NCBI RefSeq assembly: GCF_030028105.1
Contig: NC_092379.1
Span: 9,136,272 to 9,200,271, forward strand
Source: Mobula birostris
Taxonomy: Eukaryota
Direction: 5' to 3'
DNA: 64,000 nt
A program made the translations under genes and the position numbers. Position 1 is the first letter of the stretch. Every line of letters begins with the position of its first letter. Shown here piece after piece: positions 1,956 to 64,000 of this stretch. The notes under the pieces were generated by a model, which made no database searches, was not told the origin of the DNA, and worked only from the letters and a program-made list of their open reading frames with translations.

Positions 1956-2025
1956 ATGCATGGAGTTCCACGAATCTTGGGTTTGGCTATTTACTATTGC
2001 ATGATTGCAGTTATCGGCATTCCCG
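1956..2025 (+). CDS. GPR139/GPR142-like class A GPCR, gene A, exon 1 (MHGVPRILGLAIYYCMIAVIGIP+G)
   Basis: ATG at 1956, 23 codons + 1 nt, donor G|GTAAAG at 2025/2026. Splices in phase to AG|CT at 2688/2689 to give the TM1 motif GIPAN. Confidence 0.9.
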
Positions 2026-2688
2026 GTAAAGTACGAGTTTTGAGTTTGAATCTTCAAAATGTTGTGCGAATTGTATCACGGCTGTGTTTACAAGCATTTA
2101 TATTCTCTATCAACTATAGATATTCTTCCAAGAGTTTTAACTGTTTTCTCCCATTTGTAACGTTTTTTGAATACTTTATTCCTATTAATTTTTAATATAA
2201 TTTTAATACAAATTATTGCAATTAGTGATGAATGGTATTATTGCACGGTTTCTCTTCTACAGATGGACGTTTCAGAAAGATCCAAAATCATGATGGAATT
2301 CTTAATGGGGAATATTTTGTCAACTCACATCAAATGTCAAAGCAACAACATTTACCGTCACGTACAATTTTAGCTGTGAATTCCAGTTTTACCTCTTGGT
2401 AAAACACACAATTTCTAGAATAAAATTTACAACACAAACGAAAAACAAACTGTAAATTGAAATTTAATATAAATGACACGCAGAAAATACACAGCATATA
2501 AAATATAGAACATGCAAACACACAAACACATTCACCACACACAAATGCACACAGCACTCTCACATATAAACATACACACGCATATTGCCACACGCACGCT
2601 CTCACAAGCTCATTCACACTAGGTGAAGAATCAGACACATACAGCATTCGTAACCTGACCGCGCTCACTCTGTCTTCCTCTGTTTCAG

Positions 2689-3590
2689 CTAACTTCGTCG
2701 TGATTGGGGTGATGCTCCGCAGACGATGCGGTCTCTCCAGATGTATCACTGTCTACCTGCTGTCGATGGCTTTGACGGATGTCCTGGTCATTATCACGGG
2801 CGTGATATTAATCCGGATTGTTCCCATGAATTATCCGTCCACCTTCCTGAACTTCTCGCCCGGCTGCAATGTGAATGTCGCGGTAACTCACGCCGTAAGA
2901 GACTGCTCCGTCTGGGTGATGGTGATGTTCACCTTTGATCGTTTTGTGGCAATCTGCTGCCAAGAATTGAAAACGAAATATTCCACGGAACGAACGGCGG
3001 CAGTGGTGATCGGAACGGTTGTTGCCCTGAGCTGTTTCAAAAACATATTTAAGTATTTTATATATGAACCTTCATACAAAACTGAGTTAAAGCCTTGCAT
3101 ACTCAAAACAGCATTTTATACCCCGCCTGGCTGGATAGCATATGACTGGATTGACAGAATTTTAATCCCTTGTCTTCCACTGGTTCTAATATTGCTGTTC
3201 AACTTCATTACCATCAGTTTCATTGTTAGGGCCATGAGAATCCGCAGGCGACTCCAAAGCGGCGGGATCAGCGAGAGGCAGAATGACCCGGAGATGGACA
3301 GCCGCAGGAGGTCCATCGTCCTGCTCCTAAGTATCTCCGGTGTCTTCGTCCTCTTCTGGATAATGGCTCTGGCATCTTTCCTCTATGTTCGCATTGCCAG
3401 TGTCTCATACTTTTCGGGCTCCAATTTCAGTGAATCACATTTTCCGCTGGAAGAAAGTGGTTACGCTCTTCAGTTCCTATGTTCCTGCGCGAACCCCCTC
3501 ATTTATGCCTGGACACACAGTAAGATCAGAGACGAGATAAAACTGGCGCTGAAATATCCACTGACTCTGTTCAGAAAAATTGGTAAATAA
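2689..3590 (+). CDS. GPR139/GPR142-like class A GPCR, gene A, exon 2 (323-aa spliced product)
   Basis: Polypyrimidine tract + CAG acceptor. 7TM motifs: YLLSMALTD (TM2), DCSVWVMVMFTFDRFVAIC (TM3), PCLP (TM5), SIVLLLSISGVFVLFW (TM6), NPLIY and SKIRDEIK (TM7/H8). Open to TAA at 3590. Confidence 0.92.
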
Positions 3591-4019
3591 AAAAAATAAA
3601 CAATTTTTATTCTTGGGGATCAGTCCATGTTGCGAACCTTCTTCATCTAGTTTTCCATCATCTGGACACCCCAGTCGTAAAGCCAACAACATTATGTACA
3701 AGCACACATATGTGCAGGTGAAATGGATGTCTTGCTTGAAGCAGCATCAAACGTACGTAATATCAGATATGCAACATTCACACGGTAAATAAATTAAACA
3801 TACGGTTTGACACAAGAAAGAGTACATTAGAACGTTTTAGTTCAAAGTGATTCAAGTGGTCATAATGCTGGCAAACTATAGGGATGCTTGAACATGTAGC
3901 CGCGGACTTTTAGCCATCCGTATGCACATCCTGCCGATGACAAGAGCGAGGAGATGGTATGGCCTGGAGGGTGGTGATGTCTGATAATGGATGCTGCCTT
4001 CTTCAGGCAGCCGTCGAGT

Positions 4020-4540
4020 CAAGGGACCCCAGCGGTCAGACTTGAACATGGTTATTACTGTCTAGATACTCAAGCCTCGGCGGTACGTTATGGAGAGCAA
4101 CCTTTTGCCCATGTAGCAAGCTCCCCATCTCCACGCATCTGATGAACCCAAAGAAACGGCAGAGATCGATGCAGTTTGGTACCAGCAGCGTCACAGCAGT
4201 TACCAGTCAGCATTGAACTCAAAGAAAGACTGCTTTAGCGGACTTTTCACTCGGGGTTTACTTGCGAAGCCTTCCCCATGAGTTGGTATAGCCGCAAGGC
4301 GGTGGAGGTTTGAGAGTAGTGTTTTCCTTTTCCAAGATGAGCTGCTAACTACGGTTGTAGAGCCCCATATGCCCGAAGTGACTGGTTTTGAGGCAGTAAC
4401 CCGCCTTTGCCTCTTCTCCTCTCAGTCAAAAAGGTTCCTCCGAGATTAGTAACTAAGCCCTACGTGAAGGACAGGAACTAGACTTGGTTGTCAGAGGTTA
4501 TTTGAGACGCACGCCTTTAGAAGCATTTGATAGGTAGCGG
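4020..4540 (-). mobile_element. Interspersed repeat, probably the non-coding 5' part of an RTE-type retroposon
   Basis: Shares motifs (CAGTTTGG..CCAGC, GGGTTTACT..AGCCTTC..CCCA) with 43690-44045; no coding potential. Confidence 0.35.
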
Positions 4541-4929
4541 AAGCTTGTCCATCCACGATTACAATATCCTGAAGGAAACACCTACTGTAGATACTACCAA
4601 TGCGGTGATGGGATGTGTCATTGATGTATTGGACGGAGTCCACTGCACTCTGCAGATTCTGGTATTGCTGTACATTAAAATTGGCGCAGCAGATCATGAC
4701 ACATCCAGTCTCATTACCGGTACTGAAAATATTTCTGCCCTAGATTATCCTCGGACTGTGGTTTTGGTTGATGTAAAAGACCAAATTCACTGTATGCCTG
4801 GATGTGCCAATGTACATGTGTCAAATAAAGCTAATCTTACATTTATTTTATAAAATACTAGATGCTTGTCCATCAAGAGCCCACTTATATTAATCGCCTT
4901 TTTATTCTCTCCAAGCTCCATAATCCCCC

Positions 4930-5110
4930 CAGATTCAACCATACAGCTACATATCAAGGGCCATTTCGTGGCAAAGCATCGTACCGACTTCCACATGTTT
5001 GTAGTGTGGGTGGAAACCCATGTAATGACATAGAAAACGAGAAGCTTCCACACAGACAGCACTTGAGTTCAGGATCAAACCTGGTTCTTTGAATTTGCTG
5101 TCCGAATGTT
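4930..5110 (-). mobile_element. Degenerate tRNA-derived SINE (V-SINE/HE1-like core)
   Basis: TGTGGG..GGAAACC..CACACAGACAGCAC..CAGGATC(G/A)AACC pattern, repeated at ~16630-16810, 26830-27060, 37330-37500 and, on the opposite strand, 39370-39570. Confidence 0.5.
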
Positions 5111-6159
5111 CCGTCCACTTGAAACATTATACAGTAGATGAATCAGACTACAGCGGTAAAAACTACAGGCTGGCACAATGTGAGAATGTGCGTGGTTGGT
5201 TGTTCCATATTTCACTGCACACAGAATTAACCCTGTACTTTTCTGTCCCTTTCATGCAGAATGAAAGTCAACTCCAGCAGTTCTGCCATCACAGAATCAG
5301 AATATATAGACCTGCAGTATTCGCCATCTTCTGAGTCTCTACAATCCCTGTCTATTTAACCATCTTGCGTTTTACACCTGATCCTATTTGAAAGATAATT
5401 AATTTTTTGTAATCTTCCTTCTAATATCTCATTTGTTGCACAGCACTGTAAGTCCCACGCTTGGCTGACTGTCCAAAATACATCACCTTTCATTATCTCA
5501 GTGGGCACCCATTCACCATTCCTTATTCTCTCTAATGGTTGCAATTCTTTGTAACATACATTCATATCTAAATCATTTACAAAAACAATGATTTCATATA
5601 TTAATCCATCGCTGAATTTTCTCATCCCTCTTTTCCTGCCTTCCACTTGCAATTCTTAAACCCCTTACCGATCTGAACAAAAAATAGCACGTCTGCCTTA
5701 AATACACCCAATATAACTTGGTCTACTTAATTATTTGGCAACGAATTCCTCAGAATCACAACATCTGTTTGAAATTAACATCCTTTCCTGCTATCCATTT
5801 CTTTCATATCCGGTACATTTCAATGCGATATTTCGACTCTTTCGACTCCATCGAAAACAGATCCAGAAAGATCAAACGATCTCACAGGGTAAACCTCTCA
5901 TTCCTGGAATAATTCTTGGCAACTTCCTCTGGACGTTCTCCAGGTCCAGCACATCCTTCTTCGATATGCTACTCAAAATTGCACACAATGTCTGACCAAA
6001 ACCTTATAAAATCTCTAAAGTCCGCCCTTGCTTTTAAGTTTGAGTCATCCCGAAATAAACGGAAGATATCCACTCATCTTCCTTTTATCCAATCATCCTT
6101 CAAATGAAAAACTTCAGGAAAACCAGCATTAGCACACCAAGACGAGAAACTCTGCACAT

Positions 6160-11805: not shown

Positions 11806-13900
11806 AGGATAAATTTGTGGATGATACCAAGATTGGGGGTATAGCAGACAGCGAGGAAGACACCTGGACAAGCCAGCGAGCACCGTGAGGGTCATGTTTT
11901 TTGACTTCTTCAGTGCGTTCAACACCATCCGCCCTACTCTGCTGTGGGAGAAGCTGACATCGATGCAGGTGGATGCTTTCTTGGTGTCATGGATTATTAA
12001 TTACCTGACTGGCAGACCACAGTACGTGTGCTTGGAACACTGTGTGTCAGACAGAGTGATCAGCAGCACTGGGGCTCCACAGGGGACTGTCTTGTCTCCC
12101 TTTCTCTTCACTATTTATACCCTGGACTTCAACTGCTGCACAGAGCCTTGCCATCTTCAAAAGTTCTCTGATGACTCTTCCACAGTTGGATGCATCAGCA
12201 AGGGAGATGAGGCTGAGTGCAGGGTTGCGGTAGGAAACTTATTCTGCAGCTTAATGTGAAAAAGACTAAGGAGCTGGTGGTGGACCTGAGGAGAGCTAAG
12301 GTACTGGTGACCCTTGTTTCCATCCAGGGGGTCAGTGTGGACATGGTGGAGGATTACAAATACCTGGGGATACGAATTGACAATAAACTGAACTGGTCAA
12401 AGAACACTGAGGCTGTCTACAAGAAGGGTCAGAGCCGTGTCTATTTCCTGAGGAGACTGAAGTTCTTTTAACATCTGTCGGACGATGCTGAGGATGTTCT
12501 GGCCAGTGCTATCATGTTTGCTGTTGTGTGCTGGGGCAGCAGGCTGAGGGTAGCAGACACCAACAGAATCAACAAACACATTCGTAAGGCCAGTGATGTT
12601 GTGGGGATGGAACTGGACTCTCTGACGGTGGTGACTGAAAAGGGGATGCTGTCCAAGTTGCACGTCATCTTGGACAATGTTTCCCATGCACTACATAATG
12701 TACTGGGTGGGCACAGGAGTACATTCAGCCAGAGACTCATTCCACCGAGATGCAACACTGAACGTCATAGGAAGTCATTCCTGCCTTTGGCCATCAAACT
12801 TTACAACTCCTCCGCTGGAGGGTCAGACACCCTGAGCCAATAGGCTGGTCCTGGACTTATTTCCTGGCATAATTTACATATTATTATTTAATTATTTATG
12901 CTTTTATATTGCTATATTTATACTCTATTCTTGGTTGGTGCAACTGTAACGAAACCCAGTTTTCCTCGGGATCAATAAAGTATGACTATGAATATGATTA
13001 TGACTATCTCGGTCTGCAGAGGGATCTGCATCAGCTTGAAATATGTGCTGCAAAATGGCAGATTGAATTCAATGCAGACAAGTGCAAAGTTTTACACTTT
13101 GATAGGACAAATCAGGGAATGTTTGACACAGTAAACGGTAGGGCATTGAAGAGTGTGGTTGAACAAAGCGATCTAGGAATACAGGTCCATAATTCATTGA
13201 AAATGGTGTCATAGGTAGCTAAGGTCGTAAAGAAAGCTTTCTACACATTGCCCTTCACAAATCTATGTATTTAGTACAGAAGATAGGATGCTATGTTGAA
13301 GTCGTATAAAGCATTGGCGCGGCTTAATTTGGAGTATTGTGCACAGATATAATAAGACCATAGGACCATAATCAGCTAGTTCACAGGAAAATGTAAATAA
13401 GTTTGAAAGAGTGCAAAGAAACATTTCAAAGATGCTGTCGGGTCTCGGGGACCCGCGATTTTAATGCAAGATTGAATAGATTAGGACTGTAATCTTTTGA
13501 GTATAGAATATCAAGAGGATATTTGTGTGAGGTATAAATGGTTATGAGGGATACATATAACGTAAATGCCAGCAGCGTTTTTACACTGGGTGGAACTACA
13601 ACCAGAGGTCAGAGAATGAAAGGTGGAAAATGTAAGGGGAGCATGAGGGAAAACTTCTTCACTCAGAGGGTCACGAGAGTGTGGACTGAGTTTCCAGCAC
13701 AAGTGGTGCATTCGAGCTAGATTTCAATGCGTAAGAGGAATTCGGATCGGTACATGAATATATGGATAGTAGCGATATGGACGGCTATGGCCACGGTGCA
13801 GGTCGATGGCTGTACGCGATTTAAATTGTTTTGGCGTAGATTAGATGAGTTGAAGGTTCCTGTTTCTGTGCTGTATTTCTAAATGTCTCTATGATTCTAT
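11806..13900 (+). mobile_element. CR1 LINE 3' part inserted in the Gypsy LTR and interrupted by Rex1
   Basis: KFVDDTKIGG at ~11810 resumes at 13008 with LQRDL..WQIEFNADKCKVLHF, then ENFFTQRV..VW, ending in a CTATG-type tail at ~13890. Confidence 0.8.
11861..13007 (+). mobile_element. Rex1/Babar-clade LINE, 5'-truncated
   Basis: RT motifs RVMFFDFFSAFNTI, STGAPQGTVLSPFLF, LQKFSDDS, YKYLG and C-terminal TERHRKSFLP. Ends in a (TATGAC)n-like tail. Inserted in a CR1. Confidence 0.88.
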
Positions 13901-14689: not shown

Positions 14690-15600
14690 CCTCACACATC
14701 ATGAAGACTGCAAACAGGCTGGTCCCGGCTCACCTCCGACCGCTGGTCAGATCAGCCCCCGTTCCCCAGCAGTTTACCTACTATGAGCATATTGGAGTCG
14801 ACGATTCATCATCTACCTGCTGAACGGAGCCTACTTCCATTTGGACATGAAGGGAGCACGGTAGGATCATATTTTTTTGATTTCTGAAGTGCCTTTAATA
14901 CCATACAGCCCTTATTACTGGGGAAAATTCTCTGTTCAATGCAGGTCGACAGTTCCAATGTATCCTGGTTTATGGACGACATGACTGGCAGACCACAGTT
15001 TGTGCCACTTCAGAGCTGTGGGTCATACGTGGGTATAAGCAGCATTGTGGCCCCACAGGGGACTGTATTGGTTCCCTTCCAGTTTACCCTGTATACCCCA
15101 GACTTGAGATACAACGCTGAGTCATGTCATCTGCAGAAATTCTCTAATGACTCAGTAATAGTTGGGTTTAGAAATGGACGAGAGGAGGATGAATGCAGGT
15201 GGAGGTTTTTCTCGTATATTACAAGCGGAATAACCAGCAACTCAACATCAGTAAGACAAAGGAGATTTTAATGGAATTCAGGAACAGCAATCCTGAACCG
15301 CGCCCTATTCCTGTTGATGGTTAGGGCGTGGATGTGGTGAGGACCTACAACTACTTAGTGCTGCACCTGAACGACAGACGTGGGTGGAGCACCAACACGG
15401 AAACTGTGAAAGGGAAGGGCCAGAATTACTTCTACTTCTTGAGTAGACTGAGGTATTTTGGAGTATGCAAGCCTCTCCTTCACACGTTCTACCAGTCTGT
15501 TATCGCCAGCACAATCTTCCATGGGATGGTGTGCTGGGATAATGGCATCAAAACCGGTGATGTCAAAAGACTCAATAAACCGATTAGAGTGTTGCAAACT
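14690..15600 (+). mobile_element. Degenerate Rex1/Babar LINE fragment
   Basis: VAPQGTVLVPFQFTLYT..HLQKFSNDS and YNYLVLHLND..YFLSRLR motifs, with frameshifts. Confidence 0.8.
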
Positions 15601-15939
15601 TCGTCAGTTCTTACCCAGGGACAATCCGCTCCGCCATCAAGCGGTATTGACTCAAGAAAGGAATATCAATCATTACGAACCCCTACCATCCGGTACATGC
15701 ACTGTTCTCGTAGCACCGCCAGGGAAGAGCTACAGGAGCCTGAAGAGCCACCTCCAACAATTGAGAAACAGAATATTTCTGAACACATGCACAGCAGTCA
15801 TTGAGCTTTTTAAGGTATTTGTTCATTTTTGAGTTTATAGCAAATTTATGTCTTTCTTCTTTACTGCTTCATCGAAGCAACAAATTTCACATCACAAAAA
15901 ATAACGATAATAAATTTGATTCTGATTCTGAAATCCGAT

Positions 15940-20819: not shown

Positions 20820-21041
20820 TCAGGATTGCGCAGTTTATACATTATTCATCAAAAACTATTAATGACAACTGCTTTTAGCTTCGTGTTCAAATTAATTTAA
20901 TTAGCATCGATTAGCAATGATACCTTGGTAACATTCTCCCTGGTGAACGATACTGACTATAAAAATAATACACAGAGAATGCAGTGTATAGGCTACTTAA
21001 AGAATCCTGTATGTATTGGCTACTTAAGGAATCCTGTAGCA
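20820..21041 (+). promoter_or_regulatory. Conserved promoter cassette of GPCR gene B
   Basis: TAATTA at ~20898, TCCCTGGTGA 20937-20946, TATAAA at ~20958, and a 27-bp tandem duplication at 20985-21038. Confidence 0.55.
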
Positions 21042-21111
21042 ATGCATGCGCCTCCAAAGATTTTGTGGTTTGTCGTCTACTATTACACCATTGCAATAAT
21101 CGGCATTCCTG
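21042..21111 (+). pseudogene. GPR139-like GPCR gene B, exon 1 (MHAPPKILWFVVYYYTIAIIGIP+G)
   Basis: Same length and phase as gene A exon 1; donor G|GTAGAG. Confidence 0.85.
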
Positions 21112-27403: not shown

Positions 27404-28304
27404 TTAACTTGACCGTGATTGGGGTAATGCTTCGCAGACGATGTGGCCTCTCCAGGTGTATCACTGTCTACCTACTGGCGATGGCCGTGACAGATCTCCT
27501 GGTCATCTTCACGGGGGTCATTTTAAACCGGATTGCTCCCATCAATTTGCCATATAATTTCTTGACCATCATTCCGGCCTGCATTGTGAACTGCGCTGTA
27601 GTTTACGCAGTAAGGGAGTGCTCCGTCTGGGTGACGGTGATGTTCACGTTTGATCGCCATGTGGCTATTTACTGTCAAAAACGGAAAGCAAAGTATTGCA
27701 CAGAGCGAACTGCGGCTTTGGTCATCGGGACTGTTATTATCGTCAGCTGTCTCAAAAATGTATTTTATGGTTTTATATATGAAGCCCCACATAAAACAGA
27801 GCCTACACCGTGCATCATTAAGTCATCGTATTATACCTCGCCTGTTGGATAACATTTGACTGGATCGATATCATTCTAACCCCTTGTCTGGCATTCGTTT
27901 CAATTTTGCTGCTCAATTTGTTAACCATCAGACACATTTTAAGCGCCATCAGAATCCGCAGGACACTCCAGGGCGGCGGGAAGGGTAATGTACAGAGCGA
28001 CCCCGAGACGGACAGCCGCTGGAAGTCTATCGTACTGATACTAAGTATCTCGGGCATCTTCATCCTCTTGTGGTTGTTGGTAGTAATAACTTTCCTTTAT
28101 ATTCGCTTTGCCAGTGTCTCTTATTCTGCAGGATCCAATTTCAAGAACTCGATTTTCGCTTTGGAAGAAAGCGGATATGCGCTTCAGTTCCTCTGTTCCT
28201 GCGTGAACCCATTTATTTATGCAGGGACACAGAGTAAGATCAGAGACGAGATAAAGTTGGGGCTGAAATATCCACTGACGCTCTGTGATAGATTGCTAAG
28301 TTAG
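27404..28304 (+). pseudogene. GPR139-like GPCR gene B, exon 2 with a single 1-bp deletion (pseudogene or assembly error)
   Basis: CAG|TT AAC acceptor gives GIPVN. ORFs 27409-27852 and 27906-28304 join into a full 7TM protein if one base is restored at ~27844 (CCT G-T TGG ATA versus paralog CCT GGC TGG ATA). Confidence 0.88.
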
Positions 28305-33979: not shown

Positions 33980-34185
33980 CATCCTTTCAGAAGGCCTTAT
34001 GTGTTTAGAAGTGGGCTTACACAATCTTCACGATTATTCATTAAAACCGTTAGAGGCATCAGCTGTTTTAAGTTGCTTTATCAATTAATGTAAGTAGCAA
34101 CAAAACAATTTTGCCTTCCTAATATACTCCCTGGGGACTGATGTGGATGCAATCTAACAAGCTGTGATTCAAATTGCCAATTATT
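33980..34185 (+). promoter_or_regulatory. Promoter cassette in front of the orphan GPCR exon 1
   Basis: Homologous to 1720-1955; CAGCTG at ~34060, CAATTA 34082-34087, and TCCCTGGGGA 34128-34137 (EBF/Olf-1 consensus core). Confidence 0.55.
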
Positions 34186-34255
34186 ATGCACAGAGTTTCA
34201 CAAATCTTGTGGTTGCCTAGTTGTTATTGCATTATTGAAATTATTGATAGTCCTG
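34186..34255 (+). pseudogene. Orphan, degenerate GPR139-like exon 1 (MHRVSQILWLPSCYCIIEIIDSP+G)
   Basis: Exactly 70 nt from ATG to G|GT, aligns with the other first exons, and is followed by homologous intron sequence. No matching exon 2 before 40634. Confidence 0.8.
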
Positions 34256-38400: not shown

Positions 38401-39579
38401 CATTGGCAACAACAACTCCACGCACTCTCCAGATGTTGCTCCGTGCTTCTCACGGCTGTCTCCATCAAATCAGGATTGTTCACGGCATCCTACTTCACAA
38501 ATACGATATCGTTTCGGAGCGGCCGCGCGAGCTGCGTCGCGCCGCCACCTTCTCCTCCCCTCTATTTCAACGACAGCTGACGTATTATGTTGTCTGTGAA
38601 TGGCACCCCGTAAGTTCAGATTTCACTCACCTGTGAGGACAAGAATTGGATGATTTAGCAGATGAATCCGTGTTTGAGGAACTGCAGGATAGGGCATAGC
38701 TTCAACTTTCTAGTTCCAAGCGATCTCTTCTGGGAATCCATGATCTGTACAAAAGAGGGATGGGATCATCTGAACCCGATGGGAACAAATCTCCTTGCTG
38801 GCGTATTTGCTAGAGCTGTTGGGAATAGAGTAAATTAACTTGACAGCGAGTTGGGAGCCCGAATAATGGGGCTGGGAATGACACAGTTTGTATACACTTA
38901 TATGCTTGTATGGTGAGACTGTGAGGAAGAACATTCAGGTTATAGGGAAAATTTCAGTGAATGGGATGAATTGAAGTCTACCATGGAAGCAAACTCAAAA
39001 AGAGTGATGAACACTGGACTGATAGTGTTTTAATTAAATGAACGTAGTATATGGAATAAGGTCGATAATCTCGTAGTACAATTCGAGATTGGCAGGCACG
39101 GCGTTGTGCATGTTATTGAGTCGTGGCTGAAGGGAGATCATAGCTGTGAGCTTTATATCCAAGGATACAGCTTGTATGAAAAGGACAGACAGGAAAGCAG
39201 AAGGAGTGGGGCGGCACAGTTGGTAAAGAGAAATATGAAATCAAATCCGCAGAAAGGGGTAGCATAGATTTAGAAGATGTAGAATCCATGTGGGTTGAGT
39301 TAAGAAACTGCAAGGGTAAAATGACACTACTGGTAGTCCTCCAAATACTAGCTAGGATGTGAGATAGAACTCTGGAATTCGGAGTTCAATTCCGATGGCA
39401 TCTCTGTGGATTCTTACCAGCATACGTCCTCCAAGTTGGTTTTGCTCTGGTGCTTCAATCTCCCCCGACAGTTCTGTAGGTTAGTTGGTCATTTTAAATA
39501 CTCCTGTGATTAGGTTAGGCTTATTTCCAGTTTGTCTTGGGTTGTGGGGTGATGTGGCGCGAAGGACCAGAAGGATATC

Positions 39580-40010
39580 ACTATCTCCTTAGTCTTTTTC
39601 ACATTAAGCTGCAGATATTTCTGCTCACACCATGTGACAAAGTTTCCTATTGTAGCCCTGTACTCAGCTTCATCTCCCTTGCTGATACATCCAACTATGG
39701 CAGAGTCATCAGAAAACTTCTGAAGATGCAAGACTCTGTACAGTAGTTGAAGTCCGAGGTGCAATGGTGAAGAGAAAGGGAGACACGATAGTCCCCTGTG
39801 GAGCCCCAGTGCTGCTGATCACTCTGTGGGACACACAGTGTTGCAAGCACATGTACCGTGGTCTGCCAGTCAGGTAATCAATAATCCATGCCAGCATGAA
39901 AGCATCCACCTGCATCGCTGTCAGCTTTTCCCCCAGCAGAGCAGGGCGGATGGTGTCGAACGCACTGGAGAATTCAAAAAACATGACCCTCACAGTGCTC
40001 GCTGGCTTGT
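39580..40010 (-). mobile_element. Rex1/Babar LINE RT fragment (same subfamily as 11861-13007)
   Basis: RVMFFEFSSAFDTIRP..STGAPQGTIVSPFLF..LQKFSDDS. Confidence 0.85.
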
Positions 40011-40439
40011 CTAATCATCCTATTCCTATCTCGTGGCACCGCAATCAGCTTAGAGATTACTACCTTACTGATTATGAAGTGTTTGAATTATTCAGCGACT
40101 TCCACTGTTTTCTCTTATTCAGTGCGGTTATAGCTTTCTTCATCTGATGCTTGGACCTTATTCTCTAATATTCAGTTTGCCAAAATTGAAAGTTTTAATA
40201 TTAAATTTTAGCTTTTTCTCCTTTTCTTTTAATATTAACTACTTATCATGGTTAGCACCTTTTTACCTACTTTGTCCAATTCAGTATCATTCCAGAAACG
40301 CACTCCAATGTGGCTGTTAATTTCATCATGCCAAGAATGTTTTGTTCCAGCTCGCTATGCTCAATGGGCTCAGGTGAGCTTCATCAGTTGCATTCACCCT
40401 TTAGGGAGTTCATGTCTTTTCATCAAATATTACAGCGAG

Positions 40440-40633
40440 GTTACTGATTATGCAGAAGTATTCATTAAAAGAATTAAATGCACCAGCTGCTTTTAGCTGC
40501 TTTTTTGTAAATAACGTCATTAACTTAAATAAATAATGACGCCCACATAATATTTTTCCAGGTGACTAACGTTGGGTATAATTATAATAAAGTTTGAATG
40601 CAGTGCATTGGACACCAATAGCTTTCAACAACC
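40440..40633 (+). promoter_or_regulatory. Conserved promoter cassette of GPCR gene C
   Basis: CAGCTG at ~40484, TCATTA 40517-40522, TAATGA 40534-40539, TTCCAGGTGA 40556-40565 (78 nt before the ATG) and TATA-like TATAATTATAA. Confidence 0.55.
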
Positions 40634-40703
40634 ATGCACTCACCGCCAAAAATATTGGGCTTGGTCGTTTACTATACCATCATCGCAGTTATCGGCATTC
40701 CTG
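40634..40703 (+). CDS. GPR139/GPR142-like GPCR gene C, exon 1 (MHSPPKILGLVVYYTIIAVIGIP+G)
   Basis: ACCATG start, 70 nt, donor G|GTAAAG. Confidence 0.9.
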
Positions 40704-41467: not shown

Positions 41468-42369
41468 CTAACTTGGCAGTGATTGCCGTGATGCTCCGCA
41501 GACGATGCGGTCTTTCCAGATGTATCACTGTCTACCTGCTGGCCATGGCGGTGACGGATCTTCTGGTTCTTATTACGGGCGTGGTATTAAACCGGATCGT
41601 GCCCATGCTTTTACCCTTCAACATTTTGACCATCGTTCCGGGCTGCAATATGAATTTAGTGCTAGCATTCATCATAAGGGACTGCTCCGTTTGGGTGACT
41701 GTGATGTTCACATTTGATCGGTATGTTGCTATTTGCTGCCAGAAATTAAAGATGAAGTATTGCACGGAGCGAACAGCCATTGTGGTGATCGGAACGGTTA
41801 GTGCTATCAGCTGTTTCAAAAATGTAGTTAATGTTTTTATATATAAAGTTCCAACTAATAATGAGCCCACACCATGCGTGCATAAAGCAGAGTATTATAC
41901 CTCACTTGCCTGGATAGCATTTGACATGATGGAGAGCATCTTAACCCCATGTTTGCCATTCTTTCTAATTTGCTTGTTCAATTTCCTGACCGTCAGACAT
42001 ATTTTGAGGGCCATTAGAATCCGCAGGAGACTCCATAACGGCGGGAACACTGAGAATGAGAATGACCCGGAGGTGAGCAATCGTAGGAAGTCTATCGTCC
42101 TGCTGCTAAGTATCTCGGGCATCTTTATCCTCTTGTGGCTGATACCGCTGGTAACCTTCCTCTACATTCGCATTGCCGATGTCGCTTACTTTACAGGCTC
42201 CAATTTCAGTGAATCAGTTCTTCCTTTGGAAGAAAGCGGTTTCGTGCTTCAGTTCTTATGTCCCTGCCAGAATCCATTTATTTATGCTGGGACACAGAGT
42301 AAGATCAGAGACGAGATAAAGCAGGGGTTGAAATATCCACTTACTCTCATTAATAAATTACGGCAATAA
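41468..42369 (+). CDS. GPR139/GPR142-like GPCR gene C, exon 2 (323-aa spliced product)
   Basis: TTTCAG|CT AAC acceptor; intact DCSVWVTVMFTFDRYVAIC, PCLP, SISGIFILLW, NPFIY and SKIRDEIK; stop at 42369. Confidence 0.92.
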
Positions 42370-44565
42370 TCAATACTTACTCTTTGTCAAATTGTTGTTT
42401 ATTTTGCAAATCATGTGCAGCGTCTGATTTACTATCCCATGTACTCAGGTCTGCAATATACTAATGCTGTTCTGAAGTACCGATGGAGGCCCACGGCGAA
42501 AGCTGTTCATGCCGACCTACTTGCATTACTCAGTTGGTCCCATTTATTGGCATTTGCCCCATTTCAGAAAGGTTGGAAGATTCACCATTGGAAAGATTCA
42601 GCTGGGCAAGGTTGGTCTGAAAATAAAACGCTGCGAGGATGTTGCTAAGAAGGGAACGTGAATTATTGGAACCTGAAATCGTTTTGACGCGTTATCGGGA
42701 AATGATGTATATAACAATCTGTTCACTTGTTCCGCCAATCTTTCCGATCCACGTACCCATCTAATGTATGTCAAACTTTGTAATTGTTCTCATCTCTGCC
42801 AGTTCATCCGGCAGGTCGTTCCATACACTCACCAGCCGTTGCCGTCACTATTGATCGATGTTGAAGCAGCACTACCTGCTGTCCCGCTGTTCCACCCTCT
42901 TGTTACGTTAGGTAAAGTAGTAGTAGGGAGAGACGTTAGCCTAGTGGAATTACAGAGCTCTGGCTACAAGGCAGATAATTTGAGGCACGGGAATATTTAT
43001 TAATGTTCCAAAAAACTTGGCAAATTCCGAATCGGAAAGAACATCATTGCCAGGTCGGTCTGATCACACAGCGGCATGAGGGCACTGGTAAGAACGGAAC
43101 ATGAATTATTAGAACGTGGAATCGTTTTATGGGTACCCGGAAAAGGACAGAAACCCTACTGTTGGTTCACCTACTCAATACCAATAAAATATGCAGTACT
43201 CTACAAAAGTGATAGACGCGTTTATGCTGAATGCAACTCCCACTGTATTGACGATCAACCTTTTTTTTTTAAACACGAAATGAACTTTCTTCATTAATTG
43301 AAATACTCACTGAATTTTCAGAATGCTGTGAAGGAAATTTATCAAAACGCTTTGTGAACACAGCAACCCGGACCAAGATAATATCGGCACTAAACATAAC
43401 CGTTCTCTTTGGATTTACTTGCGGTGTGGGGTATTGAGTAAAGGGGAGAGATAGGTGCAACGCATGATAGCATTTCAGTATCAGATGGAAAACAGTAAAA
43501 GGTGAATAATTGTTGAAAATATAAGTTCAGAACTGGACATTAGACTTTGCAAGTCTGAAGTCGAAGTGATCAGGATTTAAACAATTATTTATTCGAATAA
43601 TTGGGTAACAGTAAATAAGATTTTGACCTTGACCTGCAGCTGCAATGGGACCCGTTCTCGGGGCTCACCCACAGGCCGCTTTTCGATATCCCAAGGGCAC
43701 GTTTACCTTACGTCAATCAGGTTGGACTTATAACTCGTAACTGCTGCCACCCATGTTGGTTTTGCTGCTTTGCAGCAGCACCGGAGTGACCTCTCCGGGG
43801 CGCAGACCTGGGCGATGAATATGGAGATCCTGGGCTGCCCAGACATCAAGATCCCCCTCTCGGCCTCGCAGATGTGGTCCGAAGAAATGCGAAGCAGTAC
43901 ATTTGGCGTCAGCTCGGCTGCAGAAGCTGCCGGGAGGTGACGTGGTACGTCATCCAACCGCCTTAGGGCTCCACTCCAGATTTGTGGCGGGTTTACTCCT
44001 TAGCCTTCTCTTCTCCCGAAGATACCCACAAGGCAGTGGGATTTGTAACCCTGGATAGGGGTCCATACCAGGTACTGTCAGCCGGAGCCAGCTGAGCCCG
44101 GGACTCGTGTAAGGCACGGTCGTCACGCCCTGTAGTAGTGACATATGGAGCCACTGCCCATATAGAAATTTCTATATTCTATAGTCTATGTTCATCACGT
44201 GACAGGACCTAATGTAGTCTTGTAGTATTTCTTAAACGTAGAAATGTATCTCTAATATTGAATTGTCATCATCATCAGTACCTATCTCCTTATTTAGCTC
44301 AATTATGGATCATTTCTGACACTAAATCCAGAATTTCGTTTTTCAGTTTTAATACTAAAAATGGAAACGGTATTACAGAATTTGTACAATTTGTACAATT
44401 ATTCATCAGAACATTTATCCTGCTTTCAGCTGCGTGTTTCAATTTATTTAATTAAAATAAATAAACAACGATACCTTCAGTATGTTCTCTCTAGTGACTG
44501 ATATTCTGCATAAATATAACAGAAAATGAATGCAGTGCATTTGGCACTTATAGAGTTCAGTAGCA

Positions 44566-44635
44566 CTGCATGCGCCTCCAAAGATCTTGACGTTGTTTAT
44601 TTACTATTCTATCATTGCAGTCATCGGCATTATTG
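44566..44635 (+). pseudogene. GPR139-like GPCR gene D, exon 1 with ATG>CTG (LHAPPKILTLFIYYSIIAVIGII+G)
   Basis: Aligns with the other first exons and the donor G|GTAAAG is intact, but the start codon is CTG. Upstream cassette TCTCTAGTGA at 44488-44497. Confidence 0.85.
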
Positions 44636-47456: not shown

Positions 47457-48344
47457 CTAATTTGACCGTTATTGTAATACTGTTGTGCAGACGATGCGGT
47501 CTCTCCAGATGTATCACTGCCTACTTACTGGCTATGGCGGTGACGGATCTCCTGGTCATTATCACCAATGTGATATTAAACCGAATAGCTCCGATGGATT
47601 TCCCGTCGGGTGCCTTGACCACCATTCCGGCCTGTAATGTGAACTTCATGCTAGGTTACGCGGCAAAAGACTGCTCCGCCTTGGTGAAGGTGATGTTCAC
47701 CTTTGATCGCTTTGTGGCTATGTGCTGCCAAACATTGAAAACAAAATATTGTACGGAGCGAACGGCGTCTATTGTGATCGGAACGGTCTGTACAGTAGAT
47801 AGTCTGAAAAATATATTTATGGCTTTTATATATGAATCTGCACATAAAACAGACCCCGGACCATGCATAATTATGTCAACATATTATACCTCGCCTGGCT
47901 GGATGGCAAACATTTCAAATCCCTGCCTGCCATTCGCTTTAATTTTGCTGTTTAATTTTTTAACTGTGAGACCCGTTGTAGTGACCATTAGAATTCGCAG
48001 GGGACTCCAGCGCGGCGGGAACAGTGAAAGGCAGAACGACCCGGAGACGGACAGTCGCATGAAGTCTATTGCCCTGCTCCTAAGTATATCAGGTATTCTC
48101 ATCTTTTTGTGGATGCTTGAACTGATAACCTTCCTCTACATTCGTATTGCTGACTCCGCTTACTTCCCAGGTTCTAATATCAGAGACTTGATTTTCCCTC
48201 CTGGAAGAAAGCGGATACGCGCTTCAATTCCCATGTTCCTGTGTGAACCAGTTTATTTATGGAGGGACCCAGAGTAAGATCAGATATGAGATAAAGCTGG
48301 GGCTGAAATATCCACTGACTCTCATTAATAAAATAATAAAATAA
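47457..48344 (+). pseudogene. GPR139-like GPCR gene D, exon 2 (disabled)
   Basis: TTACAG|CT AAT acceptor. Lesions: 5-codon deletion in TM5 (WMA-----NISNP), extra C at ~48200 shifting the frame before TM7, NPxxY>NQFIY and SVW>SAL. Ancestral stop at 48342-48344. Confidence 0.88.
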
Positions 48345-53454: not shown

Positions 53455-53490
53455 AGTCCTGACGAAGGGTCTCGGCCTGAAACGTCGACT
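53455..53490 (+). ncRNA. Minimal hammerhead ribozyme motif (Penelope pLTR)
   Basis: AGTC-CTGACGA-AGG(GTCTCGG)CCT-GAAA-C-GTC-GACT; stem I AGUC/GACU, intact catalytic core. Confidence 0.75.
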
Positions 53491-58224: not shown

Positions 58225-60300
58225 CACAAACCAGAGAAAATTTTCAGATTCTAGAAATCCAAGCAACACACTCAACATGCTCGAGAATCTCAGCAGGCCA
58301 GACAGCATTGATGGAAAACAGTTCAGTCGGCGTTTCGGGCAAAGACACTTCATCACGACTGGACGAAAAAAAAGTGAGGAGTCAGAAATAAGGAAGAAAC
58401 ACAAGGTTATAAGTTAAACTGGGAGGGGGGATGGGTGAAGTAAAAAGCTTGGAAGTTGATTGGTGAACGAGATACAGAGCTGGAGAAGGAGGTATCGAAT
58501 AGTGGAGGAAAAAAGGCCATGGGATAAAGGGGAAGGAGCACCAGAGGAGGGCAATGGGAAGGCAAGTAAATAAGGTGAGAGATGGAAAAGGGGTTGGGTA
58601 ATAGAGAAAGAGGGGGGCGCATTACGAGTTCAGGAAATTGATGTTCATGTGATCTGTCTAGAGTCTACATAAATTGGATATATAATATTGCTCCTCTGAA
58701 CAGAGTGTGGCCTCATTGTGACAGTAGTGGAGGCCATGGATGGACATGTCGGAATGGGAATGGGAGGTGGAATTAACATGGGTGGCTACTAGGAGATCCC
58801 GCTTTTTCTGGTGGACAGAGCGGAGTTGCTCGGCGAAGCGGTCCCCCAACCTATGTCGGGTCTCACCGATATATAAGAAGTCACAGCGGGGGTACAGGAT
58901 GAATAGGTGACCTCAACAGACTCACAGGTGAACCGTCGCCTCACTTGCAAGTACTATTTGGGGCCCTGAATGGTAGTGAGGGAGGAGGTCTATGTAGCAC
59001 TTGTTCCACTTGCAAAGATGTGCGAGGAAGGATGTGCCAGCGGCGAGGGAAGACTGTACAAGGGACTAGTGCAGGGAGCTATTACCGCAGAAAGCAGAAT
59101 GTGGGTGTAGGGGGAGGGAGGGGGTGTTGTTGCTGGTGGTATCCCGCTGGAGATAGCAGGTTAAGGGGAATTATGTGCTAGACGCCATGGCTGGTGGGGT
59201 GACAGATGAGGACAAGAGGAACCCTATCCCTGGTGCGGTGGCGGAAGTTTGGGCTGAAGGCAGATGTGTGCGAAATGGAATACATGGGTTTAAGGGCATG
59301 GTTGAAGCTGGACAAAGGGAAGTCCCTTTATGTGAAGAAGGAAGTCACCTCCTTCATCCTTGATTGACATTCCTCATCCTGAGAGCAGATGTGGCGGACA
59401 CAAAGGAACTAAAAGAAGGGGGTGACATTTTTTATAAGCAGCAGGGTGGGAGCAGGTATAATCTACGAAGCTGTGAGAGTCAGTCGATTTCTAATAGCTA
59501 TCACTGGATAGGCCGTCTCCAGAGATAGGGACTGAGCGATCTTAAAAGTGAAGGAAATTGTCGGAAATAGACCAGGTAAATTTGAGGGAGAATGGAAGAA
59601 GGATGTAATGTTAATGAAATTGACGAACTCGGCATGGGTGCTGGAAGCAGCACCAACGCGGTTGTGGATGTGACGTCGGAAAGGTGGTGGTGGGACACTG
59701 GTGTAGGCTTGTAACATAGACTGCTCCACGTAGTAGACAAAAAAAAGAAGCAGGGATAGCTGGGAGCCATACGAGTAATCATGGCTACACCTTTTGTTTG
59801 AAGGAAGTTGGAGGAACAAAGGAGAAATTATTGAGAGTGATGATGTTCCGCTCGATAGAGGAGAGGGGTGGCGGAGGTGATCTAGTTGGGCGTGGTGTCC
59901 GGAAAGAAACAAAGAGTTTTAGGCCCTCGTGGTGGTGAACCAAGATGTATAGAGACTGGACATCCAGGATGGCAATAAGAAGCTTGTGGCCAGAGAACTT
60001 GAAATTATGGAAAAGATCACGAGCGTCACGGATATAGATAAAGAGGGACCGAAACGATGGGGGGGGGGGGGGTGATGGGAGGCAGGTGTGATAAAACTGA
60101 GTCGGGGTATGCAAATACTGTATGAGTTCAGTGGAGCAGGAAAAAAAAGTTGTATCAATGTGTCTACCTAGAACAGCCTTGTTGATGTATAAACAGAAGG
60201 TGCGGGTTGAGGGAACTATGAGTTTTGTGGCAGAGAATGGGAGATCCCCAGAGTTAATATGGTCGGTGATGCTGTGCATTGATGCCAAGGAACTCCTCCC
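58225..60300 (-). mobile_element. Degenerate Penelope-like element (RT + GIY-YIG endonuclease + terminal repeat)
   Basis: LDVQSLY, ITLNNFSF, TRMAPSY and YVEQSMLQAY (PLE RT); GDRFAEQLRSV..VATHVNSTSHSHSDMSIHGL (GIY-YIG); many frameshifts. Confidence 0.85.
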
Positions 60301-60813
60301 TATTTCAAGACAGTTCTGGACATTGTTAATGTGGAATGCTGAAGTTCTGATTCACTGAATTATTGGCAGACAGTAGGCGCGGTGGTGGGGATTGTGCGCG
60401 CCTCTGGCGTAGCAACGACTAAGTCTCAAGGCATGGTGTCTAAGCTTGCGTCGGTGCCGCCCTCCCCACCGCAGTGTATTTGCTCAATAGAAGGCAAACT
60501 GTAATGTGGTTGACTGCAGATTTCTGCAACACTTACGTACTCAGTGTCTGAGCTACGGAGTCGTCTGTTTACGGGTACTGTACCAGGAGAGAAGCGTCGG
60601 AGCTGCTGTCAGTGCAGACCCCCAGTGTTTGCCCAGTAGAAGACAAGCTACGTTGTGATTAACTGCTGCTTCCTTCGGCATTCATAGACTGAGAATCTGT
60701 CTTATTGTCCTACAAATAGACAAGAGTCTCTTGTAAGATACAGACTTAAGAAAGTTACAATATTTCCGCACAGTTATTCATACGGAATTCTTAAATGGAC
60801 TAACTGTTTGTCA

Positions 60814-61717
60814 ACACACATCAAATTTGCTGGTGAACGCAGCAGGCCAGGCAGCACCTCTAGGAAGAGGTACAGTCGACGTTTTGGGCCGAGACCCTTC
60901 GTCAGGACTATCTGAAGGAAGAGCTAGTAAGAGATTTGAAAGTGGGAGGGGTGAAGGGGAGGTCCAAATTGATAGGAGAAGACAGGAGGGGGAGGGATGG
61001 AGCCAAGAGCTGGACAGATGATTGGCAAAAGGGATATGAGAGAATCATGGGACGGGAGCCCCAGGGAGAAGGAAGGGGGGTAGGGGGGAAAACCCAGAGA
61101 AAGCAGGATCTCCCAGTGGCCACACATTTTAATTCCACATCCCATTCCCATTTTGAAAAGTCTATCCACGGCCTCCTCTGCTGTAAAGATGAAACCACAC
61201 TCATGTTGGAGGAACAACAGCTTATACTCCGTCTCGGTAGCCTCCAACCTGATGGCATGAACATCGACTTCTCTAAATTCCGCTAATGCCCCACCTCCAC
61301 CTCGTACCCCATCCGTTATTTATATACACACATTCTTTCTCTCTCTCTCTCTCCTTTTTCTCCCTCTGTCCCTCTGACTATACCGCTTGCCCATCCTCTG
61401 GGTTTTTCCACCCTCCCCGCTTTCCTTCTCCCCGGACCTCCTGTCCCATGATCCTCTCATAGCCCCTTTGCCAATCACCTGTCCAGCTCTTGGCTCCATC
61501 CCTCCCCCTCCTGTCTTCTCCTATCATTTTGCATCTCCCCCTCCCCCTCCCACTTTCAAATCTCTTACTAGCTCTTCCTTCAGTAAGTCGTGACGAAGGG
61601 TCTCGGCCTGAAACGTCGACTGTACCTCTTCCTAGAGATGCTGCCTGGCCTGCTGTGTTCACCAGCAGCTTTGATTTGTGTGGCTTGAATTTACAGCACC
61701 TGCAGAATTCCTCGTGT
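60814..61717 (+). mobile_element. Second palindromic Penelope-like insertion
   Basis: Inverted arms around DLPVATHFNSTSHSH..LEEQQLILRLGSLQPDGMNIDFSKFR*; 13-bp TSD TAACTG(T/C)TTGTCA (60801-60813, 61718-61730). The hammerhead motifs at 60874-60909 (-) and 61586-61621 (+) each carry one core mutation. Confidence 0.88.
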
Positions 61718-61913
61718 TAACTGCTTGTCACCCAGTTACAAATGTCAAAGCAATAAATGTCGCTCTGAAGACCATCAAGTGCAAATTTATCGTAGTTCCA
61801 CCATTTGGCATTGTCACAAACACTTATTCAGAAAACAAAATGTATACCAGACACATCACACACAGACAACACACAAACCATTCTCACCACACACATATAA
61901 CACGCACAAAAAT

Positions 61914-61937
61914 GCGCGCGCGCGCGCGCACACACAG

Positions 61938-61963
<26 letters not shown>
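61914..61963. repeat. (CG)n(CA)n compound microsatellite
   Basis: GCGCGC..CACACA run (alternating purine-pyrimidine). Confidence 0.9.
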
Positions 61964-61968
<5 letters not shown>

Positions 61969-62149
61969 CTCATGATAGCACAATGCATTTCCACTATTTC
62001 CTCATTGCCCAAAACACCACACATTCACACACCACAAATTAACGTAACAAGCACACCACCCTCACAAAATAGAAGCGTCACCACTCTTATGTCTGTCACA
62101 CACATACCAGAGCAATACTTATGCCATTATCACATAACGTCTTTACGTA

Positions 62150-63330
62150 ATGGCGGGAGACTTTAATCAAGCTCGCTTCAAATCTCTCGCTAACTAGCAA
62201 CTAGTGCCTGCATTACTGGAGGACTCAACACAGTTGACTGATTCTATTCCACCATCACAAACACAATCCACCGCCCACACTTTGGTAAATCCGAAACCTG
62301 GCTCTGCTTCATCTGCTTTTGTACAGGCAGGAAGTGAAGAGCGATAGGAAGACAATAAAGAGCTTGGTGGTAGAAACGAAGAGAATATTGGATGGATCAC
62401 GTTCAAGGATTCATTAATGGACCTAAAATACAAAAATTGACACTGACTTCAAGAGGATGTATGTGGATGTGTGTACACCCACAACATAAGTTCAATTCTT
62501 TCTATGACGGAGGCCCTGTATGATTAGGCTAGATCAAAGTGACATTTAGGACAGTTGCTTTAGAGTCAGATAACAAATCCACGTAATACGAGAAAAAGAA
62601 TACAATTTCGGACTAAATTGAATCACAGATTGACAGCTGACAGCTGTACCTGGGCTTGCACATTATCTCTTCCAACACGACGAGATCGCATAGCATAAAT
62701 GGTGACGACCCGTTACTCCCGGATGAGCTCGGGGCACCTTAAGCAGGATTTGACTGGAAGAGTTTTAACACACCCACTCGAACCTCTGATTTCTGATAAT
62801 CCTGCTATCCCTGTCTCCGAAGCTGACGTCCAGGCATTCCACAAAAATGAGAATTCAGGAAAAACAGACGGTTTAACAATTAGAGTACGAGCGATTTGCA
62901 AGGTCTAAATAGCTGGACTGCTCATGGACGACTTCCACCGCTCACTTCAGTAGCTCTGATTTGTCTGGCACTTCAGTCTGCTCCGAATCATCTGGATAAC
63001 ACACACTCCGTAGTCAGTCAGCTGTTCATCAACTAGCTTGGTATTCAACACAATCATACTATATAATCTCAACAGCTATATTCAACACTTAGTCCTCTGT
63101 GCCTCTCTGCGCACATGGGTACGTGAATAGTTTGCAGAACATCATAAGAATATTAATACAGACCACATTCAGTCAGACTTGGAAAAGAATAGTTCCTCAC
63201 TGACCATTAATATTGGTGCACTTCAAATCTACATTCTTACGCCCCTGCGTTTCACTCTAAACACACATGACTCCCGTACTAAACAAAGCTTCATAAATAA
63301 ACTCCATGATGACATCACGGTGATTGGATG
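62150..63330 (+). mobile_element. Highly degenerate Rex1-like LINE
   Basis: AGDFNQA endonuclease motif at ~62153, VSEADV, and LTINIGALQ..KLHDDITVIG. Confidence 0.55.
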
Positions 63331-63689
63331 TAAGACACAGAAAATGCTGGAGGAACTCAGCAAGTCCGGCAGCATCTACGGAAAACAGTAAATAGTGGAC
63401 GTTTCAGGCCGTGACCCTTCATGAGATGTTGCATGGCCTGCTGAGTTCCTCCAGTATTTTACTATGTTGCTTTACATTTCCAGCATCTGAGTCATCAGCT
63501 GTTAATACTTGGGAGCTCACATATCATATTATTATATTAGAATATTTTCCCTCTGCATCGGGATAGACTCAGATGGAGCGCACCACTGCGATTTTCCTTT
63601 CTTAAAAGGTTAAGGAAGTTTTGATAATTATATAAAAAATGTCATCTTGTGTAAGGTTGTTGGTTTCAGTGGGCTAAGGGTGGCTTTCA

Positions 63690-63931
63690 CCAATTATATC
63701 CGGCCTCTGAGACTTTGTTCGAATGAGAAGCAGGATTACACAATATATATAATTACTGATGAAAAATACATATTCATATCAGCAGTTTTAATTTGTTTGT
63801 TTCAATTAATATATGTAGCATAATAGCCGATGATGCCTTCCTATCTAATATGCTCCCTGGTGACTAATATTAGGGATAAGTATAAGAATCTCTGAATGCA
63901 GCGTAGTGTCTGTTGACAAGTGTCAATAGCA
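63690..63931 (+). promoter_or_regulatory. Promoter cassette of GPCR gene E (closest to gene A)
   Basis: Long near-identical stretches with 1706-1955; CAATTA 63803-63808 and TCCCTGGTGA 63854-63863. Confidence 0.65.
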
Positions 63932-64000
63932 ATGCATGGAGTTCCACGAATCTTCGAGTTGGTCGTTTGCTATTGCATCATAGCGCTAATCGGCATTCCT
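63932..64000 (+). CDS. GPR139-like GPCR gene E, exon 1 (MHGVPRIFELVVCYCIIALIGIP; runs off the window)
   Basis: 23 codons aligning with gene A exon 1; the donor site and exon 2 lie outside the window. Confidence 0.85.
   Translation, partial: MHGVPRIFELVVCYCIIALIGIP

Follow-up and report, generated by a model that had tools for sequence, protein, structure and literature searches.

The window analysed here comprised 64,000 nt of the Mobula birostris genome (contig NC_092379.1, positions 9,136,272 to 9,200,271 of the forward strand) and contained no runs of N; all positions below are those of the window. It carried six units of a two-exon gene predicted to encode a G-protein-coupled receptor (GPCR) of class A, every one on the + strand, in the order A, B, E, C, D and F. 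Units A and C had open frames, a CAG acceptor and a compatible splice phase. In unit A, the 70-nt coding part of exon 1 (1956..2025; ATG at 1956, GT donor at 2026) was separated by an intron of 663 nt (2026–2688) from exon 2, which was open to its stop codon (2689..3590; Pfam 7tm_1, E 9.8e-17). Unit C had its 70-nt exon 1 coding part at 40634..40703, an intron of 764 nt and an exon 2 likewise open to the stop codon (41468..42369; Pfam 7tm_1, E 2.4e-20). Exon 1 contributed 70 coding nucleotides, directly followed by a GT donor, in five of five complete copies. An earlier note on this DNA had described this 70-nt exon as common to all units, which was correct for its coding length and layout; the sequence itself was not common (mean pairwise identity 0.70). 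Exon 1 stopped one base into a codon, with the remaining two bases supplied by exon 2, and each copy of exon 2 was preceded by a pyrimidine tract and CAG.

The other four units were broken or incomplete. Unit B retained the ATG and the GT donor of exon 1 (21042..21111), followed by an intron of 6292 nt. Its exon 2 (27404..28304) was a pseudogene with a 1-nt deletion near 27840–27845, beyond which the original frame meets a stop that ends at 27852. In unit D, CTG replaced the start codon of exon 1 (44566..44635), and after an intron of 2821 nt the pseudogenized exon 2 (47457..48344) contained a 15-nt deletion in transmembrane helix (TM) 5 and a 1-nt insertion near 48196–48200. The original frame of D ended at 48277, and its NPxxY motif read NQxxY. 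Unit E was an orphan exon 1 (34186..34255; donor GTACAA) with Glu and Asp within the TM1 segment, and neither the DNA nor the protein profile detected an exon 2 remnant for it between 34256 and 40433. Unit F was cut by the window end after the first 69 nt of exon 1 (63932..64000). Five units could be judged, of which two were intact (A and C) and three were dead (B, D and E).

This inventory was obtained with several searches. With the longest receptor open reading frame (ORF) as the query, tblastn matched exon 2 of A at 2700–3581 and of C at 41473–42366 (+ strand), and the exon 2 matches of B (27409–27840 and 27846–28295) and D (47462–48199 and 48201–48335) were each split over two frames. 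A DNA profile of the exon 2 copies and a family protein profile run against the six-frame translation, covering both strands, found four copies of exon 2 and no more. An exon 1 profile found six copies; it was built from the same six and so shows only the absence of a seventh. This inventory agreed with the composition given in the earlier note, namely at least six same-strand units with two intact, two frameshifted, one orphan exon and one running off the window.

The copies of exon 2 were 73.5–76.5% identical in DNA, with 0.55–0.74 synonymous substitutions per synonymous site (dS) between paralogues. Likeness beyond the exons was limited to a stretch from approximately 150–200 nt before the ATG through approximately 100–200 nt into the intron. 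A recent amplification of the copies was ruled out by the exon 2 identity, and on these distances the window copies are old duplicates. The closest proteins to gene A came from Hypanus sabinus (79.7% identity) and Mobula hypostoma (70.9%). The tandem birth-and-death mode proposed in the earlier note was borne out by the dS values, by the three dead units among the five judgeable ones and by the closer relation of A to the Hypanus protein than to its own neighbours.

Class A membership was indicated by Pfam 7tm_1 matches above the cut-off of 30.5 bits in three of three long exon 2 ORFs (61.7, 73.6 and 44.9 bits). These searches used exon 2 alone, which provides approximately 299 of the approximately 323 residues. 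The fold was predicted with AlphaFold2 (AF2) and the family alignment for a natural full-length homologue, P0002, which was 68.7% identical to C. The model (predicted local distance difference test, pLDDT, 85.4; predicted template modelling score, pTM, 0.84) had seven long helices and a C-terminal helix, and Foldseek returned at least 500 class A matches for it (best E 9e-9). TM1 began at residue 8, leaving a 7-residue N-terminus, as short as the first inspection of the sequence had suggested. The protein was compact (approximately 323 aa, with a short tail), and the intron position inside TM1 split the coding region.

A family profile and alignment were made from 98 proteins, consisting of 87 of the best 120 proteins of the search described below and 11 representatives, picked by length. 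In this alignment D54, D107 and R108 were invariant, and N25, C83, C160, N292 and Y296 were conserved in at least 90% of the proteins. In total, 19 residues were invariant, mostly on the cytoplasmic face (C-G-L-S of intracellular loop (ICL) 1, the DR of TM3, Cys 122, Asp 223, Arg 229 and Gln 300). The face was near-invariant across RRxCGLS of ICL1, DRF, the inner end of TM6 and NPxxY, which points to one signalling partner common to the paralogues. Judged by domain matches, predicted fold and conserved residues, the window genes are class A (rhodopsin-like) GPCRs. The CWxP motif of TM6 was altered in the family (P0002 positions 247 and 249), with Leu in 67 and Pro in 8 of the 98 proteins at 6.50, and Tyr in 55 and Trp in 35 at 6.48. 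All window copies had Trp at 6.48 and none had Pro at 6.50.

Gene C kept 19 of 19 invariant residues, B and D each lacked one, and A lacked two (C122S in ICL2 and Q300H at the start of helix 8, both at sites invariant in 98 of 98 family proteins). The Hypanus counterpart of gene A retains Cys 122 and Gln 300. 'Intact' for gene A denotes an open frame, and given these two substitutions the receptor may be impaired or altered in coupling. The two changes in A, and the three broken units out of five, would be expected if the cluster were a decaying remnant in which the open frames of A and C are not functional genes. We consider this very unlikely, since the frames of both genes are still fully open at a dS of approximately 0.55, with their splice sites and promoter blocks preserved, and since their ratio of nonsynonymous to synonymous substitution rates (dN/dS) was 0.40 overall and 0.29 in the inner half of the protein. 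In addition, C deviated at 9 and A at 10 of 83 conserved sites, with several of these deviations common to the whole ray clade, and the 79.7% identical Hypanus counterpart of A is canonical.

The family extended far beyond the window. Of 1145 candidates in a word-indexed protein search, 437 had E ≤ 1e-5. Sharks or rays were the source of every one of the best 120; 77 of the 120 belonged to Heterodontus francisci, and each ray species contributed one to three. Most of the best 120 were labelled 'probable G-protein coupled receptor 139' by NCBI, and the remainder carried unrelated automatic names. When 50%-identity representatives were searched exhaustively, 656 matched at E ≤ 1e-3, of which 157 reached E ≤ 1e-10 and 97 reached E ≤ 1e-30, and the close representatives examined were all elasmobranch. 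The ESM Atlas contained two further 'probable GPR139' clusters with 82 and 154 members. By these searches, the named rows examined place the family in sharks and rays alone, in line with the lineage expansion that had been suggested from the window alone. The genes are already in public annotation, under the borrowed name 'probable GPR139'. The earlier note had called the family a candidate unrecognised chemosensory one, and full-text literature searches found no published description of it. The available text of a catshark sensory-organ paper (PMC11979771) did not mention it, and that of a 2025 review on GPR139 (PMC12208981) contained no passage on sharks or paralogues.

A phylogeny, which the earlier note had suggested as a check, was constructed in two versions, both with 'GPR139'-named relatives only and no true GPR139 or GPR142 sequence. 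The quick tree had 73 rows, namely the four window copies, 51 of the best 120 proteins (every non-Heterodontus row and every fifth Heterodontus row, 295–350 aa) and 18 further relatives. The careful tree had 40 hand-picked rows. The four window copies were placed in a ray clade together with proteins from Hypanus, Mobula and Leucoraja (Shimodaira–Hasegawa-like approximate likelihood ratio test, SH-aLRT, 100 in the quick tree; 100/100 in the careful tree). Gene A paired with the Hypanus protein P0001 and not with its neighbours (100 in the quick and 100/98 in the careful tree). In the careful tree, the elasmobranch family in which the window copies nest was one clade (97/91), its sister group was a clade of single-copy genes from amphibians and sturgeon represented by P0237 (92/98), and the clade of P0234 branched outside both. 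Tandem duplication and loss, occurring repeatedly, expanded the family from a gene of which amphibians and sturgeon have a single copy.

The salamander protein P0237 had single counterparts, 66–74% identical, in 19 other amphibian rows and a 46% identical one in sturgeon; the next relatives after these were elasmobranch family members at 32–33% identity. Unlike the elasmobranch family, the P0237 clade had one gene per species among the rows seen and a nearly invariant pocket. The clade of the coelacanth (Latimeria) protein P0234 and the catshark protein P0279 was the next relative out, approximately 30% identical to the window proteins. Counterparts of P0234 with 50–66% identity were present in catshark, zebra shark, sawshark, sturgeon, teleosts, amphibians and reptiles. 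This jawed-vertebrate clade differed from the expanded family in its conserved pocket and in having its own catshark, zebra shark and sawshark members (60–66% identity). Orthology of the expanded family to the P0234 gene was rejected because P0234 has its own shark orthologues. P0234 (P0279–P0396) and P0237 (P0403–P0422) are two separate, well-conserved single-copy orphan receptors of non-mammalian jawed vertebrates. Both carry the annotation 'probable GPR139'; by their scores, neither is orthologous to GPR139, and no mammal was present among the rows listed. P0265 (355 aa), a candidate for GPR139 itself, proved not to be GPR139.

Human GPR139 (7vug, 9m42), also a class A GPCR, was the best solved match to the 98-protein profile (E 4.6e-17, 65.1 bits), and the profile alignment revealed sequence habits in TM1–TM3 common to both. 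The runners-up were the prolactin-releasing peptide (PrRP) receptor (57.3 bits) and CCR1 (57.1 bits, E 1.2e-14). GPR139 was the best solved match for both single-copy relatives as well (P0234, 1.8e-18, with the neurotensin receptor next at 2e-10; P0237, 2.6e-13), and these two genes connect the family with GPR139. When window protein C alone was compared with solved GPCRs, the PrRP receptor (E 1.1e-4) and GPR139 (E 1.2e-4, 25 bits) were barely matched. A Foldseek comparison against the PDB was non-discriminating, returning generic class A peptide receptors with GPR139 third.

GPR139 differed from the family in several respects. It retains Pro 6.50, where the family mostly has Leu, and it is described as highly conserved across vertebrates in the review (PMC12208981), whereas the family has hundreds of members. 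The ligand contacts reported for GPR139 in PMC12775434 are Glu 3x32, Arg 6x51 and Asn 7x38, plus Asp 2x61 and a Trp of extracellular loop 2. In the family, the anchors Glu 3x32 and Arg 6x51 gave way to variable, mostly hydrophobic residues. Position 3.32 was occupied by Ile (36 of 98), Asn (31) and Thr (7), position 6.51 by Phe (43), Tyr (20) and Leu (14), and the site aligned with N7x38 by Tyr (56), Phe (28) and Asn (6). Glu at 3x32 and Arg at 6x51 were outside the seven commonest family residues at these positions. The window copies had T/V/A/G at 3.32, A/V/P/E at 6.51 and Y/Y/F/Y at the N7x38-aligned site.

Scores and pocket residues both speak against orthology of the window genes to GPR139; 'GPR139-like' fairly names their nearest known relative, not a subfamily to which they belong. 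The earlier designation 'GPR139/GPR142-like' held in that GPR139 was the best solved profile match, weakly so (approximately 8 bits over the PrRP receptor), and failed in that the genes are not orthologues and lack the anchors. The accompanying suggestion of amino-acid ligands by analogy to GPR139 was not upheld: because the anchor residues are replaced, the analogy to an aromatic amino-acid sensor is without support.

The variability of the family was distributed unevenly over the receptor. Using the helices of the P0002 model to split the protein, column entropy in the family was 1.38 bits in the outer half (156 positions) and 0.90 bits in the inner half (167 positions; Mann–Whitney p 2.5e-9), and 1.35 vs. 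0.79 bits when only helices were considered. In the single-copy P0234 clade, used as a control of similar overall divergence (91 of 119 rows, length-filtered; mean pairwise identity 0.58 vs. 0.65 in the family), the corresponding values were 1.32 and 1.25 bits (p 0.46). A set of 23 positions, which we take to form the orthosteric pocket, was numbered from the x.50 anchors with TM4 omitted. Family entropy at these positions was 1.78 bits, compared with 0.97 bits at the other 196 membrane positions (1.8-fold), and none of 5000 random position sets reached this value. In contrast, pocket and other membrane positions had 0.74 vs. 1.06 bits in the P0234 clade and 0.05 vs. 0.46 bits in the P0237 clade, with control alignments to P0002 at approximately 30% identity.

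Window paralogues had dN/dS values of 0.30–0.40 (Nei–Gojobori), with the overall value for the intact pair A–C at 0.40. For this pair, dN was 0.291 in the outer and 0.164 in the inner half, and dN/dS was 0.55 and 0.29, respectively. On the basis of the window copies, the extracellular halves had been described as divergent, and both the entropy and the A–C comparison confirmed this. By the entropy comparison, pocket-lining residues are diversified between paralogues, and the single-copy relatives are without such a signature.

The pocket variation could also have arisen in receptors whose ligands are endogenous (e.g., neuropeptides or metabolites) and which multiplied without an environmental sensing role, through relaxed constraint or through co-evolution with internal ligands. 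The nearest solved relatives (GPR139, the PrRP receptor, NMUR2, CCK1R and NTSR1) are neuromodulator or peptide receptors, both single-copy relatives are conserved as ordinary endogenous-ligand receptors are, and dN/dS was <1 everywhere. However, simple relaxation would hit the pocket and the cytoplasmic face alike, whereas the former was the most variable part of the membrane domain and the latter near-invariant. Three dead units out of five and a high turnover between species would also be unusual for endocrine receptors, and no expansion of peptide ligands to match that of the receptors is known to us from sharks or rays, although no search aimed at it was made. On this balance, we regard receptors for endogenous signals as improbable.

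The region upstream of the genes was compared by aligning the 200 nt before each ATG of the six units. Blocks common to all six, including the orphan exon E, were homeodomain-like, O/E-like and TATA. The homeodomain-like block was of the CAATTAAT type and was present before all six units. In A, D and F, the O/E-like block (TCCCTGGTGA) was located 78 nt before the start codon, and the TATA block (TATAAATATAA) 57 nt before the ATG. Since the TATA block lies at this distance, the real exon 1 is probably approximately 100 nt long including the 5' untranslated region (UTR). The proximal promoter and 5' UTR of unit A spanned 1756..1955, as delimited by the six-way upstream alignment and motif matches, with the O/E-like site at 1878–1887 (TCCCTGGTGA). 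In unit C, this region was assigned to 40434..40633 by the upstream alignment and contained a variant O/E-like site, TTCCAGGTGA. The sites of the other units were at 34128–34137 in E (TCCCTGGGGA), 44488–44497 in D (TCTCTAGTGA), 63854–63863 in F and 20937–20946 in B. The site in B was displaced by a 27-nt tandem duplication in the 5' UTR region (approximately 21010–21041), which offset the blocks of this promoter by 27 nt from their place in the other units.

Mean pairwise identity was 0.62–0.64 in the promoter but fell to 0.46 farther upstream and to 0.45 downstream of the genes; random segments gave 0.38. The window contained five exact matches to the O/E-like pattern, all at these promoters; the pattern was derived from the sites found, so a count against shuffles is circular and only the common position before the ATG is informative. 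We take TCCCNNGGGA to be the O/E (EBF) consensus. Pairs of homeodomain and O/E sites mark the promoters of odorant receptor genes, and the resemblance of the window promoters to these is suggestive only.

These genes belong to a very large class A GPCR family with a diversified pocket, found in sharks and rays alone among the named rows examined. We hypothesized that this family provides a set of sensors, most likely for external cues and with a chemosensory epithelium as the leading site. We assign this reading a probability of roughly 50%. In this scheme, the gene that amphibians and sturgeon have as a single copy was multiplied by tandem duplication and loss in elasmobranchs. The fixed cytoplasmic face would couple all paralogues to one common signalling partner, and each paralogue would bind a different small ligand. 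Together, the receptors of the array would then sense a variety of chemical cues, which most likely come from outside the animal. Expression would be expected above all in the olfactory rosette or in taste or solitary chemosensory cells, under the control of the short TATA promoter that precedes every unit and of its O/E-like and homeodomain-like sites.

A chemosensory role is the leading reading; it is favoured by the way in which the family evolves, by its compact proteins, by the blocks in the promoter and by the very small sets of OR, TAAR, ORA and T2R genes in catshark. The expansions of OR, TAAR, ORA/V1R and T2R genes, like those of MRGPR and FPR, resemble the family in their tandem arrays with many pseudogenes, in a compact protein of approximately 320 residues with a variable pocket over a conserved signalling face, and in their origin from a conserved, non-sensory-looking relative. 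Odorant receptor genes also have a short promoter with homeodomain-like and O/E-like sites. The family differs from all of these in its coding region, which is split by the intron inside TM1, and in sequence, by which it is a member of none; Pfam assigned only the general 7tm_1, and gene A alone had a sub-threshold match to Srx.

Several points weigh against the chemosensory reading. The role is itself a hypothesis, with expression in sensory cells and a response to external cues as its predictions. The same evolutionary pattern is known from non-olfactory families, e.g., MRGPR and FPR, and dN/dS never exceeded 1 between the window paralogues. The pocket positions were those generally assigned in class A receptors, with TM4 not amenable to anchoring, and one species dominates the family alignment, whose rows are related and not independent. 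Promoter identity was only slightly above the estimate for neutral decay (approximately 0.57 at a dS of approximately 0.65). Four of the six O/E-like sites were one base off the O/E consensus and that of C more; only the site of E was perfect. O/E (EBF) sites also function in B cells and in other neurons. Finally, the 50 most specific genes of a catshark 'brain & olfactory epithelium' library included no GPCR, as stated in PMC11979771. Genes expressed sparsely, one receptor per cell, would not be expected in such a top-50 list anyway.

Diversified sensors could instead be employed outside olfaction and taste, in somatosensory neurons, mast cells, leukocytes or barriers, where, like the MRGPR and formyl-peptide receptors (FPR) of mammals, they would detect microbial, parasite or damage molecules. 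Tandem birth and death, pocket diversification and the conserved signalling face fit such a role as well. The O/E-like site would suit EBF-driven lymphoid expression, given the function of EBF in B cells, and chemokine receptors were close in the profile search (CCR1 1.2e-14 vs. GPR139 4.6e-17). Against this, hundreds of genes per species would exceed the immune and somatosensory GPCR expansions known to us, and the pairing of homeodomain-like and O/E-like sites is, to our knowledge, better known at odorant receptor promoters. We therefore judge non-olfactory sensors rather unlikely as the explanation.

Cartilaginous fishes are known for acute chemical senses. According to PMC6368271, the OR, ORA and TAAR families of the catshark number only five to eight genes apiece and TAS2R genes are absent, which puts in question what small-molecule detectors exist apart from V2Rs. 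The compact class A receptors described here, hundreds in number and proposed for a chemosensory epithelium, are an obvious candidate to fill this gap. Tentatively, in sharks and rays, whose OR, TAAR and ORA genes are very few and which lack T2R genes, a GPR139-related orphan receptor that is still single-copy in amphibians and sturgeon may have given rise to a large class A repertoire of chemoreceptors. Its genes would be activated in sensory neurons by the homeodomain and O/E promoter logic known from odorant receptor genes, and it would constitute an additional vertebrate chemoreceptor family, so far undescribed. If the function were immune or somatosensory instead, the family would still be among the largest lineage-specific GPCR expansions in vertebrates. 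The orthology implied by the public label 'probable GPR139' was unsupported by the tests made here. New in this analysis are the single-copy control clades and the sister placement, the pocket test with controls, the anchor-residue test and the promoter alignment. The two single-copy relatives in bony vertebrates are unstudied orphan receptors too.

The long intron of B and the intergenic gaps of the window appeared to be filled with repeats. An inverted repeat pair of approximately 430 nt and 85% identity was located at 39579–40011 and 11867–12279. Among five large intergenic ORFs, one (15328–15804) had a Pfam match, to ALKBH8_N, the other four having none, and we presume it to be a retroelement-type fragment. 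In the four copies of exon 2, taken as 2689–3590, 27404–28295, 41468–42369 and 47457–48335, the observed/expected ratio of CpG was 0.79–0.90, and for the whole window it was 0.61, which seems high for a vertebrate.

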